Below, in pieces: positions 1,248 to 16,412 of a DNA stretch of 20,372 nt. The notes below the pieces were generated by a model. The model saw only the letters and a program-made list of their open reading frames with translations, ran no database searches and was not told the origin of the DNA. This stretch comes from Utricularia gibba (taxonomy: Eukaryota > Plantae > Magnoliophyta): assembly GCA_002189035.1 (NCBI GenBank), contig NEEC01000233.1:1-20372 (forward strand). The letters run 5' to 3'. Position numbers and translations under genes: made by a program. How positions within the stretch are numbered: position 1 is the stretch's first letter; every line of letters starts with the position of its first letter.

Positions 1248-1460
1248 CAAAAAAGAGGCCAAAAAAAAGGAAAAAAAAAATAGGCCAAAAAAAGAGGCTA
1301 AAAAAAAAAAAAAAGCCCAAAAAAAGAAAAAGAGGCCCAACAAAATAAAAAAGAGGCCAAAAAAGAAAAAAAGAGCCCAACAAAAGGACAAAGAGGCCCA
1401 ACAAAAGAAAAAAAGACTCCAGAAAAAAAAGAGCCAGAAAAAATAGTCTAAAAAAAAACA
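1248..1460. repeat. A-rich degenerate minisatellite, A(n)-GAGGCC(C)/AGCCC units
   Basis: Poly-A tracts are interrupted about ten times by gaggcc/taggcc/gagccc/gactcc/gagcc-like words. This accounts for the spurious Lys-rich and Phe-rich ORFs in the track. Confidence 0.85.
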
Positions 1461-1509
1461 AATATTGCCAGCCTTCCCCGCGATCGAATCCGATCGCTAT
1501 TTATAAAAA
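1314..1509 (+). promoter_or_regulatory. Second site II cluster plus TATA box
   Basis: AGCCCA at 1314 and 1374, GGCCCA at 1334 and 1395, TATAAAA at 1503-1509, directly upstream of the structured repeat array. Confidence 0.45.
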
Positions 1510-1510
1510 A

Positions 1511-2540
1511 AGGGGGATTTTCATCGCAGCAGGTATCACTCTCGTGATCGATAATGTCTGCAAGGCTTGGCAGCCATCCTCTATCATCTATCGCAACGCT
1601 GGCTTGCCTACCCATTTAGGTAATTTATTGTGTAAGCTATTATGGTATACGGCTCCTTGTAGGATAAGTTACTTGTTGTGAGTGGGGTTAAGTAATCAGC
1701 TAGGATTGTTGTAGTGTAGATTAGAATACAAAGTTTTTAACTCCGCCTGTGCTAAACAGCACAGCCAGTCCCAAGCCTGGGTTAAGGAGGAGGGAGAACT
1801 TGTCTTATCTAAGAGGGTGTAATTTGTTGTCTTGTATTTTGATGATTTGGGTAGGCATCTTCTACTCTGATGCTACTAGGTCATATCTTGTGTCTGGTAG
1901 CAATCCCTGTTTTGTGCTTTCAGTATTCTATTTGAAATCAGAAGGCATTATGTTGTGTCCATGACTGTTGGTTTTAGGGTGGGGCTGAGTTCTTAGACTG
2001 GGATTGCTTTAGAGTAGATTAGAATACACGGTTTTTAACTCTTCCCATGCAAGTAGCAGCCTGCCCCATGCCTGGATTAAGTAGGAGTGAGACTTTAACA
2101 TATCTAGGAGGATTGAAATTGTCATCTCGTATTTCGCCAATTCCAGCATTCATAGTGTTGACGGTTTTTCTACACCTACATTATCTTGCTCTTGGTAGCC
2201 ATCCATCCCTGTATTGTGTTTGCAGTAGTCTCTTTGAAACTAAAAAGGCAGCATGCTTTCTCTGCATGCACTGCTCTCTTGTTTCATGGTTTTGCTACAT
2301 GCTTTTCAGAATGCATACCGTTCTGGGGCGAGTGTTTTCTCTGCATTTCTCCACTTCTATTGCTCTCCTGTGTCAACCAAACTGGCACAGTGCCTGCGCA
2401 GACTCAAAGAGTAGCTAGTTACGGATATCAAGAGGGTTGTGTTAGTGAACTGACTCACAAGGGTGCAGGCAATGCATCTAACCCGGTCTCTTCAAACTCG
2501 TGAACTGCTTGGGGCATGCAGAGACAGATCCATCCAGTCC
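1511..2540 (+). ncRNA. Candidate structured non-coding RNA cluster of unknown class
   Basis: No credible ORF. Repeat units fold manually into long stems with multibranched tops and follow a site II + TATA block. Transcription, strand and class are inferred. Confidence 0.35.
1683..2250. repeat. Degenerate tandem duplication, period ~295-298 bp (units ~1683-1950 and ~1979-2250), with more diverged partial units on both sides
   Basis: gtagattagaataca is identical at 1716-1730 and 2014-2028, within a 41-nt block (1703-1743 vs 2001-2041) with 36/41 identity. Other shared words: tatcta(a/g)gagg at 1806 and 2101, YtggYagcMatcc at 1567, 1894 and 2192, and tttgaaa....aaggca at 1931 and 2233. Confidence 0.85.
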
Positions 2541-3098
2541 AGGTTTTAGCTCTAAAGACCGGTTTTCAGCCATTTTACAAGTTAAGTGAGCTCAGTTCTT
2601 GTTTCGGATTTCTTCAATTCAAGACGACGGAGTCGGCCTTTGTGTTTGTAGTTGTTTGTAGCTTCTTTATGGATCAAGGAGGGGGAGACATGAACAGGCT
2701 TCTGGTGAGCAGCAGGGAAGCGCCGCTGAATGTATTCCTTGCTTGCTGCTTGCTGCTTGCTACGCTGATATTGTTCCATTTTGATTGCAAATTAAAAGTA
2801 ATTATAGTAAAAGGAGACGTGTCCCAGGCTACTCGACGCCGTTTCTGGAAGTAGTTAATTAATGAAGATCCAATTAAAAAGAGTACTTAATGAGGAAATT
2901 AGTATATTTAAACGGCGTCGTATAGAGGAAACATGGATGGATACGCGAATTTTGTTTATAATTTCAGGTTAGAGTTCTCACTCTTCCGTCGTGCTGCACT
3001 GTGACCGCCTTCGCGCGGTGAGGATTCTCTGGTTAAAGGTTCCGCCTTTCATCTTCGAGTGGAGGTGTAGGTGATCGGGATCGGGGAGAATTGGCGGA

Positions 3099-6000
3099 AT
3101 GCTGAAGGCGAATGGGGGCGCCGGATTGCCCACGGGTCGTTGCAGATCCACCACGCTCGCTAAAGTCGCGGGGTTTCTGCTCATCTCACTGGTTTTCTTC
3201 TATTTAGGGAAACGTTTTTCTGATGGATCATCACAGCAGCTCCTTTTCTACGCATCGCAACAGAACCCACAGCCCAAAAACTCTGCTTTTGTCGGTCTGT
3301 CCCCGAATCTGAACAAGACATTTGATATCACTCGCCTTATAAACGCTACTGCGCCGCCCCCGCGATAGTGAATACTCGGAATGAGGCAAAAGAAGTTGCT
3401 GCTCTTCCTCCGCCACCACCATCACCGCCACCGTCTTTGGAAAGAATGGGTGTGGTTGATGAGGATGGAAGGATGACGGATGATTTCCAGGTTGGTGATT
3501 ACGACCCAGAGCTGGTGGAAAGTTGGTCGAAAACGAATGAGAGCGAGGATGCAGGAATTGATGGAAAGGGGAGAATGTGAGGATTAAGATCAAGAAGCTT
3601 CCGCTGTGTCCTGAGAGTATGAGAGAGTATATACCATGTTTGGACAATATCGAGGCGATCAAGAAGCTGCATGATACTGAAAAAGGGGAAAAATTTGAGA
3701 GGCATTGTCCCGAAGAAGGAAAAGGCCTGAATTGTTTGGTTCCTCCCCCTAAGGGTTACAGAACACCTATACCATGGCCGAGAAGCCGCGATGAGGTGCA
3801 GTCACAATGGCATCTTGATCATTTTTCGATCTCTTCATTTATTCATTACAATTATATGTAGATGGCACATTTATCATCAGTTTCGAGGTGTTCGAATGTG
3901 ATTTAAGCTTGTTGATAGTTGTCGACCATTTTGATTAATTTTTTTGTCATTGGCAGGTTTGGTTAGCAATGTTCCTCACGCCCGTTTGGTTGAGGATAAA
4001 GGTGGTCAAAATTGGATCACTATTAGTAAAGATAAGTTCAGGTTTCCTGGAGGAGGGACACAGTTCATACATGGGGCTGTTGAGTACCTGGATCAAATTG
4101 AAAAAGTATTGTTTTGTTCTTAGTTTCCATAGGAGCTATAGTACTTTCTCCAAAATCCATGTTTCCTTCGGAAATTTATGCTTTTACCCGTGTTCTTCAG
4201 ATGGTGCCAGAAATTGCATTTGGTCGCCATACTCGAGTTGTGTTGGATGTCGGGTGTGGTGTAGCTAGTTTTGGTGCTTATTTGTTATCACGCAATGTCC
4301 TTACACTCTCTGTGGCGCCAAAAGATGTTCATGAGAACCAGATCCAGTTTGCCCTTGAACGTGGTGTTCCTGCAATGGTTGCAGCATTTGTTTCACGGCG
4401 ATTACTTTACCCTAGTCAAGCATTTGATCTTATTCACTGCTCAAGATGTAGAATCAATTGGACCAGAGATGGTATGGTTATATTGTATGTAATTCTATTA
4501 CTTGAAAGCTTGTCTGCTGCCTATGTTAATGTAAGAGCACCTGTTAGTTTAGTTGAAATTTTGTTGCTTTATGTGGAATATCATAAGGAACTAGATCTTG
4601 CAAGCTTCTTTGTTGATTTTTTTTTTTTCAGCAGCCTTATTTTTGCATAGCTTAAAGGCCATTGTGAATTTCTGTCATTGAAATTTGTCTTCTTTTTTAA
4701 AAATGAAACTTCAAACCAAATCCTGAGAATTTTATCGTTCATGGCTTCCATTGCTCAGAACGAATTCAGTGTCCGCCTGGACTTTATGTTATATGTATCC
4801 CATTTAAACTAATACAGGCACTTTTTTCTCTCCTCCTGTTCGTTAGATGGGATTTTGCTACTTGAAGTCAACAGGATGCTTAGGGCAGGAGGGTATTTTG
4901 CTTGGGCTGCACAGCCAGTTTATAAGCATGAACCAGCACTTGAACAACAATGGGAAGGTAGCCCTTGAGATGATTTTATTCTCAAAGCCTCATTCAATTT
5001 GTGAAATGCATTTCTAGTATTGAAGAGACTCATTATTTCTTCTGCCTGGTCTCCACCTTTTTTTTTTGGAAATACTTCTGGGTGGCTGCATGAGAATGCA
5101 ATTTTCATACTGCTGTAATCGAGAGATATATATTAATGCATGCACTCATCTACTGCAGAAATGGTTAATCTCACTAGTCGAATGTGTTGGACCCTCGTGA
5201 AGAAAGATGGTTACATAGCCATATGGCAAAAGCCATCGAATAATAGCTGCTATCTTAGTCGTGCTGAAGGAACTCATCCGCCCCTCTGTGAGCCTGATGA
5301 TGATCCTGATAATGTTTGGTACGCAGCTATTTTAATCATAACCTGTGTTGTCAGATTCAAGAGAATAGTTCCTAAGTACTGAATTTCATTTCCATGTTCT
5401 CCTTTGTTTGAATTTTGTTAGGTATGTTGATCTCAAAGCATGCATAAGCCGTCTGCAGGAGAATGGATATGGCTCTAATGTTAGTCCCTGGCCAGAACGG
5501 TTGCAAAATCCTCCAGATAGGCTACAGAGCATACAGTTTGATGCATATATGTCAAGGAAAGAACTATTCAAGGCAGAATCTAAATACTGGAAGGAAATAA
5601 TTGAGGGCTATGTACGTGCACTTCACTGGGGCCAATATAAGATGAGAAATGTATTGGACATGAAAGCTGGATTTGGGGGTACATTACCTCCTGCCTTTTA
5701 TCTACTGTGCCTTTTTTTAAGAGCCTAGACAGTTGAACTTATTCATATTTCTTATGGTTCTTATCATTCTCTGGCAGATTTGCATCAGCTCTTATCGAAA
5801 ACAAGCTGAATTGCTGGGTGATGAATGTTGTCCCCGTTAGTGGAACCAATACATTGCCTGTTATTTATGATCGTGGTCTCATTGGAGTTATGCACGACTG
5901 GTATGAATTGTAACATGGCTTCCCTTACGTAATTTTATTCCTGGTTTGCTCAATGAATGGTTGGTTTCTGGTTACTGCATCAATGAGTTTCAGGTGTGAA

Positions 6001-7325: not shown

Positions 7326-8768
7326 ATGGCGGTTTTCAGATCCATTCCTGGTCTCTGCAAGAAGCTTATGGTGAGAAATATTTGCAGCGGCGGATTCAGA
7401 ATCACCTCAAATAGTTGTCTCCAGCATCGTTGCAAGTCGACGGCGCGTGTCAAGCACATCCGGGTTCCTATCCCCTTCATTGACCAACTGAAACAGTGCC
7501 GAAATCCCGATGAATATCTTGCTCTCTTCCGGGATTTCAATGAAATGGGCTACAAGCATCAGTACCCATGCTTCGCTTCTTTGGTGTACAAGCTTGCTCG
7601 CGCCCGGAGATTCGATGAAGTGGAAGCCGTCCTGGATTTCCTCAAAACTCACGACATTAGATGCAAAGAAGCTCTGTTTATCGGACTGATTCGTCACTAT
7701 GGAAAGGCAGATATGATCGACAAGGCCATGGAAGTTTTTCTCGAGATGGGAAGATCGTGGAACTGCGTCCGCACGCGTCACTCCTTCAACACGATTTTGA
7801 ATATGTTGGTTGACGGAGGGCGCGCTGCCGATGCTGCAGAGCTGTTTGAAAAAGCTCCGACGTTGGGATTCAGACCGAACTCGGTGTCATACAACGTCAT
7901 GATGAAAATGTGGTTGCAGAAGGGCGAGTTGCAGAACGCCATGAAGATGTTCGATGAAATGCTCGAGAGAAACATTCAGCCTACTGTGGTAACATACAAT
8001 TGTCTGATAGCGTTTTACTGCACAAGGGGCGACATAGAGCAGGCGAACAAGGTGTTGCATGATCTGAGGAAGAAGGGGAAGTGCGGCAATGCAGTAAGCT
8101 ACGCCTTGCTGATGGAAGCCTTATGCGCTTCAGGGAAGTTCACAGAAGCCAGGAAACTGATGTTCGACATGGAATACCATGGCTGCAAAGCAGAGCTCGT
8201 GAACTATGGAGTGCTAATGACAGCCCTCACCAAAAAAGGCTCAATCAGCGAAGCCAAAGATCTCCTCCTTGAGATGAAAAGGAGGAGCATCAAACCAGAC
8301 GTTGTCATATACAACATCCTGATAGACTACTTCTGCAGAACAGACGGGAAAGCTTCAGAGGGATACAAAATGCTAGTAGACATGCAACTCAAGGGATGCG
8401 AGCCAAACGCAACCACATTCCGCACCGTGGCGGATGGCTTGTGCAGGGAGGAAGATTACATGGGAGCTCTGAGAGTTGTGAATGCCATGCTCTTAAGCAG
8501 AGCATTCCCCCGGATCGAAACGTTCCGGCGTCTTGTGATGGGGCTGGTCAAGAATGGGAAGCTGGAGGAGGCAGGGGTTATGTTGGAGGAGATGAACAGG
8601 AGGAAAATGAGCTTGGAATGGAGTTGCTGGGAGGCCCTGGTGCAGATGGCATGCAGGGACGATGAGGGTCATTCCAGTTTACATGTTTTAGGCCATGTGC
8701 TGATGCCATTCTCCTTGCATTTGAAGTGGGAGAAGAACCTAGTAAACTTGGACACTGTATCTGCATAG
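7326..8768 (+). CDS. P-class pentatricopeptide repeat protein, probably mitochondrial (resembles Arabidopsis At1g07740)
   Basis: Intronless 480-aa ORF with a basic Ser/Arg-rich N-terminus and tandem ~35-aa repeats (PNSVSYNVMMK, PTVVTYNCLI, PDVVIYNILID, PNATTFRTVADG). The At1g07740 resemblance is from memory. Confidence 0.95.
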   Translation: MAVFRSIPGLCKKLMVRNICSGGFRITSNSCLQHRCKSTARVKHIRVPIPFIDQLKQCRNPDEYLALFRDFNEMGYKHQYPCFASLVYKLARARRFDEVEAVLDFLKTHDIRCKEALFIGLIRHYGKADMIDKAMEVFLEMGRSWNCVRTRHSFNTILNMLVDGGRAADAAELFEKAPTLGFRPNSVSYNVMMKMWLQKGELQNAMKMFDEMLERNIQPTVVTYNCLIAFYCTRGDIEQANKVLHDLRKKGKCGNAVSYALLMEALCASGKFTEARKLMFDMEYHGCKAELVNYGVLMTALTKKGSISEAKDLLLEMKRRSIKPDVVIYNILIDYFCRTDGKASEGYKMLVDMQLKGCEPNATTFRTVADGLCREEDYMGALRVVNAMLLSRAFPRIETFRRLVMGLVKNGKLEEAGVMLEEMNRRKMSLEWSCWEALVQMACRDDEGHSSLHVLGHVLMPFSLHLKWEKNLVNLDTVSA

Positions 8769-15494: not shown

Positions 15495-15563
15495 GTTTTT
15501 TTTTTTAATCTCAAATAAAAGTAAACCTACATATTATCTTCCATCTAACGAAACGGACCCTTA
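15495..15563. mobile_element. Terminus of a PIF/Harbinger (Tourist-like) MITE
   Basis: aacgaaacggaccc at 15547-15560 (reverse complement gggtccgtttcgtt, Tourist-type TIR) followed by TTA, the typical TSD. The other end was not confidently located. Confidence 0.5.
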
Positions 15564-15576
15564 GGGTTTAGGGTTT
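15561..15576. repeat. Two plant telomere-type repeats (ttagggtttagggttt)
   Basis: Directly visible; overlaps the putative MITE TSD. Confidence 0.6.
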
Positions 15577-16299: not shown

Positions 16300-16412
16300 G
16301 CATTAGCCACTCATTGCTGCTGCAGCATCATCAAGATTCTCGTACAGATGTGCTCCCAGAGGCATCATCCCACATGAATCTTGAAGATGCTCCACCTGCA
16401 AAAACTGGCTGC
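16300..16412 (-). ncRNA. MIR172: miR172 precursor hairpin (c/d-type mature sequence ending in G)
   Basis: The minus strand of 16320-16340 reads AGAATCTTGATGATGCTGCAG (canonical miR172). The star arm GGAGCATCTTCAAGATTCATG is at 16373-16393 and pairs with one U.U mismatch in the 15-nt core. The lower stem agcca/tggct is at 16305-16309 and 16406-16410. Confidence 0.97.

Follow-up and report, generated by a model that had tools for sequence, protein, structure and literature searches.

Twister ribozymes are built from stems P1, P2 and P4, with P3 optional and the RNA ends in P1. Pseudoknot T1 joins L4 to L1, pseudoknot T2 joins bulged L4 nucleotides to the conserved GC of L2, and the class is typified by strongly conserved nucleotides in L1, L2 and L4 together with a U-A cleavage dinucleotide beside P1 (PMC5408937). 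The chemistry of the class is established, cleavage leaving a 2′,3′-cyclic phosphate on the upstream piece and a 5′-hydroxyl on the downstream piece (PMC5408937, PMC8782182). Twisters occur in plants, where two of eight predicted rice copies have been verified and their function is unknown (PMC10226581). Twister variants also sit at the 5′ end of the RTE/Perere-3 non-LTR retrotransposons of Schistosoma mansoni and carry out the processing of that end (PMC8501958, PMC7761336).

The locus described here lies in a 20,372-nt stretch of DNA (the window), which, judged by the relatives of its PPR gene, is nuclear DNA of a Lamiales flowering plant. A sequence-only reading of this window had proposed a tandem array of units that fold into similar multibranched hairpins and form a cluster of undescribed structured RNAs. 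A comparison with Rfam identified a match to RF03160 (twister, type P1) in the first complete unit, unit A, at positions 1734–1798 of the plus strand (68.8 bits, E 4.8e-14). The gathering score of this family is 67.2 bits, which unit A exceeds by only 1.6 bits; the alignment extends over the full model (1–68 of 68) and was obtained on the plus strand only. The match removes a false lead, since the supposed undescribed class is a described family that the sequence-only reading had not considered. Unit A is a new copy of this known ribozyme class, and we put the probability at about 0.78 that it holds a complete, probably active type-P1 twister whose tandem duplicate, in unit B, has decayed.

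The ribozyme, with an extended P1, occupies 1731–1801 (+), as delimited by the Rfam match, the pairs read off the sequence and the fold. All of its stems consist of standard pairs. P1 has four base pairs (1734–1737/1795–1798) and an extension of three more (1731–1733/1799–1801), P2 has four (1741–1744/1786–1789), P3 has seven (1747–1753/1758–1764) and P4 has four (1765–1768/1777–1780). Pseudoknot T1 pairs 1770–1772 with 1792–1794 (C1770-G1794, C1771-G1793 and C1772-G1792), and T2 pairs 1775–1776 with 1745–1746 (G1775-C1746 and C1776-G1745). The U-A dinucleotide adjoining P1 places the predicted self-cleavage site between U1738 and A1739 (site rule from PMC5408937). Thus, the score, the stems, both pseudoknots, the conserved nucleotides and the U-A dinucleotide of unit A are all those of a type-P1 twister. 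When 1731–1801 was folded alone as a nested structure, P1, P2, P3 and part of P4 were obtained, and of 200 dinucleotide shuffles of this 71-nt core only 4 folded as stably (z=-2.45). The sequence-only reading had drawn three of these helices correctly, as its third stem and two apical hairpins of unit A are real and correspond to P1, P3 and P4. Its view of a structured RNA under selection holds for the core of unit A in this respect, although P2 and the pseudoknots had been missed.

Nearly all of the 35 highly conserved positions of RF03160 are kept in unit A. The exceptions are one P4 pair in which the change is compensated, one A-to-U change that also occurs in unit B and in L003, a twister from a metagenome, and two variable positions of the P3 loop that are gapped out where the alignment is ambiguous. 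In its helices, conserved loop nucleotides, pseudoknots and U-A dinucleotide, unit A resembles the type-P1 twisters of rice (Osa-1-4 and other predicted copies; RF03160), and like them it has a protein-coding gene nearby in the nuclear genome of a plant. Unlike the rice twisters, the present copy comes from the Lamiales, its P1 is extended to 7 bp, it has further flanking stems and a decayed tandem duplicate, and its cleavage is predicted. The likeness to the RTE/Perere-3 variants lies in the position of the cut, here a predicted one: in both cases it falls near the ribozyme's own 5′ end, such that the ribozyme stays on the downstream RNA and frees that RNA from the upstream transcript. In contrast to those elements, whose twister variants are truncated, this locus has a full twister, and it is accompanied by no retrotransposon body, reverse-transcriptase ORF or target-site duplication.

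A scan of metagenomes with the twister pattern yielded two twisters, at 3382–3442 (+) of L003 and 1551–1610 (-) of L004, with unrelated flanks. The P2 and P4 letters of their type-P1 cores are the same as in copy A. Immediately before each of these two twisters comes an A-rich tract, the arrangement that one would expect if the ribozyme stood at the start of a retroposed element.

Unit A (1682–1978, +, ~297 nt), which holds the intact twister, is followed by its old duplicate, unit B (1979–2273, +). Self-comparison of 1400–3100 gave a single significant pair, 1682–1967 versus 1979–2273, with 69.5% identity over 298 columns (E 3e-37), which bears out the claim that these units are diverged tandem repeats. 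The repeat is head to tail, the homologous cut sites of A and B are 298 nt apart, and no further copy of the unit was detected by blastn in the 20-kb window. A truncated first unit and a diverged third unit had also been proposed. The stretches concerned (1511–1681 and 2274–2600) gave scores that 18 to 344 of 500 shuffles equalled, and blastn returned nothing for them. Since both stretches score within the shuffle range, we interpret the array as a single old tandem duplication.

Unit B retains a decayed copy of the twister at 2032–2093 (+), which scored 17.9 bits against RF03160 (E 1.7). Reading the pairs off the sequence revealed one mismatch in each of P1, P2, P4, T1 and T2, and the invariant L4 loop has changed from U to C and from A to U. 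The fold of this copy was no better than that of shuffles (z=-0.20). Unit B therefore departs from a type-P1 twister in score, helices, pseudoknots and conserved nucleotides; judging from these changes, it is an old tandem duplicate whose ribozyme, now decayed, is predicted to be inactive. The proposed polycistronic cluster of similar functional RNAs is thereby reduced to two units, the second of which has lost pairs in its ribozyme helices and pseudoknots. It had also been claimed that A and B keep the same helices, which is correct for the outer stems but not for the twister, in which P1, P2 and P4 each have a mismatch in B.

Identity between the two units varies along their length. It is 82% in the best-conserved flank (1700–1733), 71% in the twister (1734–1798), 52% in the middle (1799–1884), 65% in the 3′ arm of the outer stem (1885–1906) and 79% in a pyrimidine-rich CAG stretch and the next 17 nt (1907–1940). 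The 5′ arm of the outer stem of A (1703–1721, +) lies inside the best-conserved flank, and its 3′ arm (1885–1906, +) is followed by the conserved pyrimidine-rich stretch ending in CAG (1907–1923), which looks like a 3′ splice site. The outer stems described in the sequence-only reading exist, with energies of -11.4 kcal/mol in A and -15.0 kcal/mol in B. When the 5′ arms were paired with downstream sequence they outperformed 280 of 300 shuffles in A and 292 of 300 in B, which is moderately above chance. In the best thermodynamic register, the comparison of the flanking stems of A with those of B gave 12 unchanged pairs, two one-sided changes, one broken pair and no compensatory change. The double change from U1715-G1892 to A2013-U2190 is present in the register that had been drawn originally; two sequences cannot carry a covariation argument for the outer stems.

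The larger hairpin that the two units were said to share fared less well. Taken whole, the units folded no more stably than dinucleotide shuffles, with z=-0.69 for A, z=+0.98 for B and z=-0.05 for the minus strand of A, an outcome that the sequence-only reading had itself named as refuting it. Inclusion of the outer arms gave z=-1.6 for A and z=+0.8 for B. The consensus from RNAalifold for A and B was weak (-17.65 kcal/mol), and of the stems only the outermost one, of 6–10 bp, was preserved in it. The folds of the neighbouring stretches (1525–1700 and 2245–2540) were likewise no better than shuffles.

Upstream of unit A we found the promoter motifs that had been described. An A-rich minisatellite with a period of ~20 nt (1248–1446) contains four site II-like RGCCCA cores (at 1314, 1334, 1374 and 1395), and a TATA-like box follows at 1502–1508 (+), 236 nt upstream of the predicted cut; we infer a promoter role for this box. 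A second site II/TATA-like module is present at 1–600, ~900 nt upstream of the module before the twister, where ~155-nt repeats with eight RGCCCA cores are followed by a TATA at 597. In one frame the 20-nt-period minisatellite reads as a lysine-rich 105-aa ORF (1129–1446, +); as the period is not divisible by three, this ORF is probably spurious. A protein search with the 71-aa ORF over unit A gave no candidates.

Downstream of the repeat, on the same strand as the twister, are the coding exons of a PMT11-type methyltransferase (PF03141; 3099–6591, +), which were placed by comparison with several proteins, that of Paulownia among them. From the predicted cut to the start codon of this gene is 1360 nt. 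No protein in the collection was closer than ~81% to this PMT11; one exon piece of the gene (5423–5680) served as a query. An intronless PPR gene follows at 7326–8765, and the relatives closest to it, at 64–67% identity, come from Rehmannia, Paulownia, Salvia and Erythranthe. Exact look-ups of the PPR gene and of the ORFs at 2047–2415 and 2516–2851 gave no match in this collection, which has no protein above ~81% identity to the PMT11 of the window. Here, 735 nt separate PMT11 from this adjacent PPR gene, which is of the At1g07740 type. The two genes are on separate chromosomes in Paulownia, and the PPR gene of Salvia is flanked by other genes. The protein identities of the window genes to other Lamiales are low (64–75%), which together with the PMT11/PPR adjacency suggests a rearranged, fast-evolving lineage. 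Farther downstream, two tandem TTAGGGT units, which are telomere-repeat or telo-box-like, occur in an AT-rich intergenic stretch (15561–15576). A hairpin resembling a MIR172 precursor is found at 16310–16405 (-); it scored 69.3 bits against an Rfam gathering score of 70 (E 1e-13) and is probably a genuine miR172 gene.

This arrangement raises the possibility that the twister lies in a long 5′ leader or a 5′-UTR intron of the PMT11 mRNA. Self-cleavage would then compete with splicing, strip the cap from the message and tune PMT11 output. The twister and PMT11 share a strand, the cut would fall 1360 nt upstream of the ATG and behind the TATA/site II-like module, rice twisters have been reported in gene UTRs (PMC10226581), and acceptor-like sites lie at 1923, 2225 and 2967. 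Base composition did not separate introns from exons in this region. However, a second TATA-like stretch near 2903, upstream of PMT11, could be the promoter of PMT11 itself. A further argument against a leader came from other Lamiales. A scan for RF03160, at the gathering score and at E up to 1, detected no twister in the 6 kb that precede the closest PMT11 homologues in Paulownia, Erythranthe nasuta and Andrographis (L005–L007). The same 6-kb regions had no similarity to positions 1450–3100 of the window. The position of the twister is thus not anciently conserved. Because these three loci show no microsynteny with the window beyond PMT11, the result goes no further than to show that the Lamiales do not share a twister upstream of PMT11. 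Two PPR-based loci (L001 and L002) were rejected as orthologous loci, as PMT11 is not next door in either. On balance we regard a place in the PMT11 leader as unlikely, though it is the alternative that these data leave in the best standing.

A twister could also be a neutral leftover without present function, one that is intact by chance and either untranscribed or irrelevant. Its absence from this position in the three other Lamiales species is consistent with such a relic, and the decay of the sister unit shows that the sequence can decay. That same decay provides the contrast with copy A. Six damaging changes at highly conserved core positions occurred in B and none in A, and if changes fell equally on both copies we calculate a probability of ~0.03 that all six would be in one copy, a figure that comes from two sequences without an outgroup. 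Furthermore, the flanks and copy B have diverged by 30–48%, the middle of the unit being 52% identical, and at this neutral divergence a copy A free of selection would be expected to lack several of the 35 core positions. Instead, A retains these positions or compensates for the change, with the exception of the one change common to B. Our estimates of the probability of chance preservation range from roughly 0.004 to 0.03, and we consider a neutral leftover improbable. The distribution of the six damaging changes suggests that copy A has been kept by selection, which, with two sequences and no outgroup, is evidence rather than proof.

The head-to-tail arrangement calls to mind ribozyme-bearing mobile elements. 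In plants, hammerhead retrozymes and tandem hammerhead repeats have direct repeats of ~300 nt with a small self-cleaving ribozyme in each unit (PMC4918200), a feature that they share with the locus described here. We therefore weighed whether the two units might be the relic of a mobile or satellite-like element, the twister counterpart of hammerhead retrozymes or of tandem ribozyme satellites, whose cuts once released a ~298-nt monomer able to circularise. In favour of such an origin are the 298 nt between the homologous cut sites, the established formation of unit-length RNAs from tandem ribozyme repeats and retrozymes in plants (PMC4918200, PMC7761336) and the reported enrichment of type-P1 twisters in plant class I transposons (PMC11933835). 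The marks of a plant retrozyme are a central region between two LTR-like repeats with hammerheads, a primer-binding site for tRNA-Met, a polypurine tract and duplications of the target site. At this locus the ribozyme is of another class, hammerheads being absent, the repeats are adjacent with no central region between them, no tRNA-Met primer-binding site was found even when two mismatches were allowed, and neither LTR-like or A-tail boundaries nor a reverse-transcriptase ORF are present. We accordingly rejected the locus as a retrozyme. One of the two ribozymes is predicted to be inactive, which means that no monomer could be released now, and there is no other copy in the window. With two adjacent units, no primer-binding site and no retroelement ORF, a retrozyme-like or satellite origin is unlikely, and we rate it below even the neutral leftover.

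The weakest alternative is a polycistronic cluster of a new class of 250–300-nt structured RNAs, which the somewhat above-chance outer stems of both units and the single double change might have favoured, but which we consider very improbable because the core structure is that of a known Rfam family, the whole-unit folds and the consensus fold of A and B are unremarkable, and there are two units only. A plant polycistronic snoRNA cluster was rejected as well, since only sub-threshold matches at the level of chance were obtained (SNORD95, E 4.1; sR55, E 2.2), both on the opposite strand.

As a type-P1 twister, unit A would act as follows. A plus-strand transcript would fold into the double-pseudoknot twister structure and cut its own backbone between U1738 and A1739, leaving a 2′,3′-cyclic phosphate on the upstream piece and a 5′-hydroxyl on the downstream piece. 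The downstream piece would keep almost the whole ribozyme at its 5′ end, and the upstream piece would take the short 5′ strand of P1 only. We infer that Pol II transcribes the A/B pair as part of a non-coding RNA or a leader with its start near the TATA at 1502 (at ~1530), the pair possibly lying in intron-like sequence. In such a transcript the cut would split a capped piece of ~200 nt from an uncapped downstream RNA, and the 7-bp P1 together with the flanking helices could hold the two halves paired after the cut. The twister may reside in an intron of a non-coding gene or in the PMT11 leader, or it may be a stand-alone processing site. An intronic setting would agree with the acceptor-like stretch that is conserved where each unit ends.

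Self-cleaving ribozymes of animal introns, such as the CPEB3 HDV-like ribozyme and intronic hammerheads, offer a precedent for such a setting, as their cleavage competes with splicing in a Pol II intron. The possible likeness is confined to a place inside a Pol II intron, which is putative here; the ribozyme class and the kingdom differ. In the literature that we found, no plant twister is described that has a decayed tandem partner or that lies in an intron.

The locus is a natural matched pair, with an intact ribozyme and its decayed duplicate 298 nt away. Because this pair is situated behind a promoter-like module and beside a well-known gene, it is a convenient locus for tests of cleavage and of its effects on neighbouring transcripts. 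More speculatively, and doubtful to a degree between that of a PMT11 leader and that of a neutral leftover, the twister and its conserved flanks (1700–1733 and 1885–1940) might constitute a self-cutting intron that works as a functional module in a family of plant non-coding genes. In such a module the ribozyme would sever the intron, the clamp helices would keep its halves joined, and the output, be it a non-coding RNA or the downstream PMT11 message, would be set by the competition of cleavage with splicing. If true, this would be the first role assigned to a plant twister.
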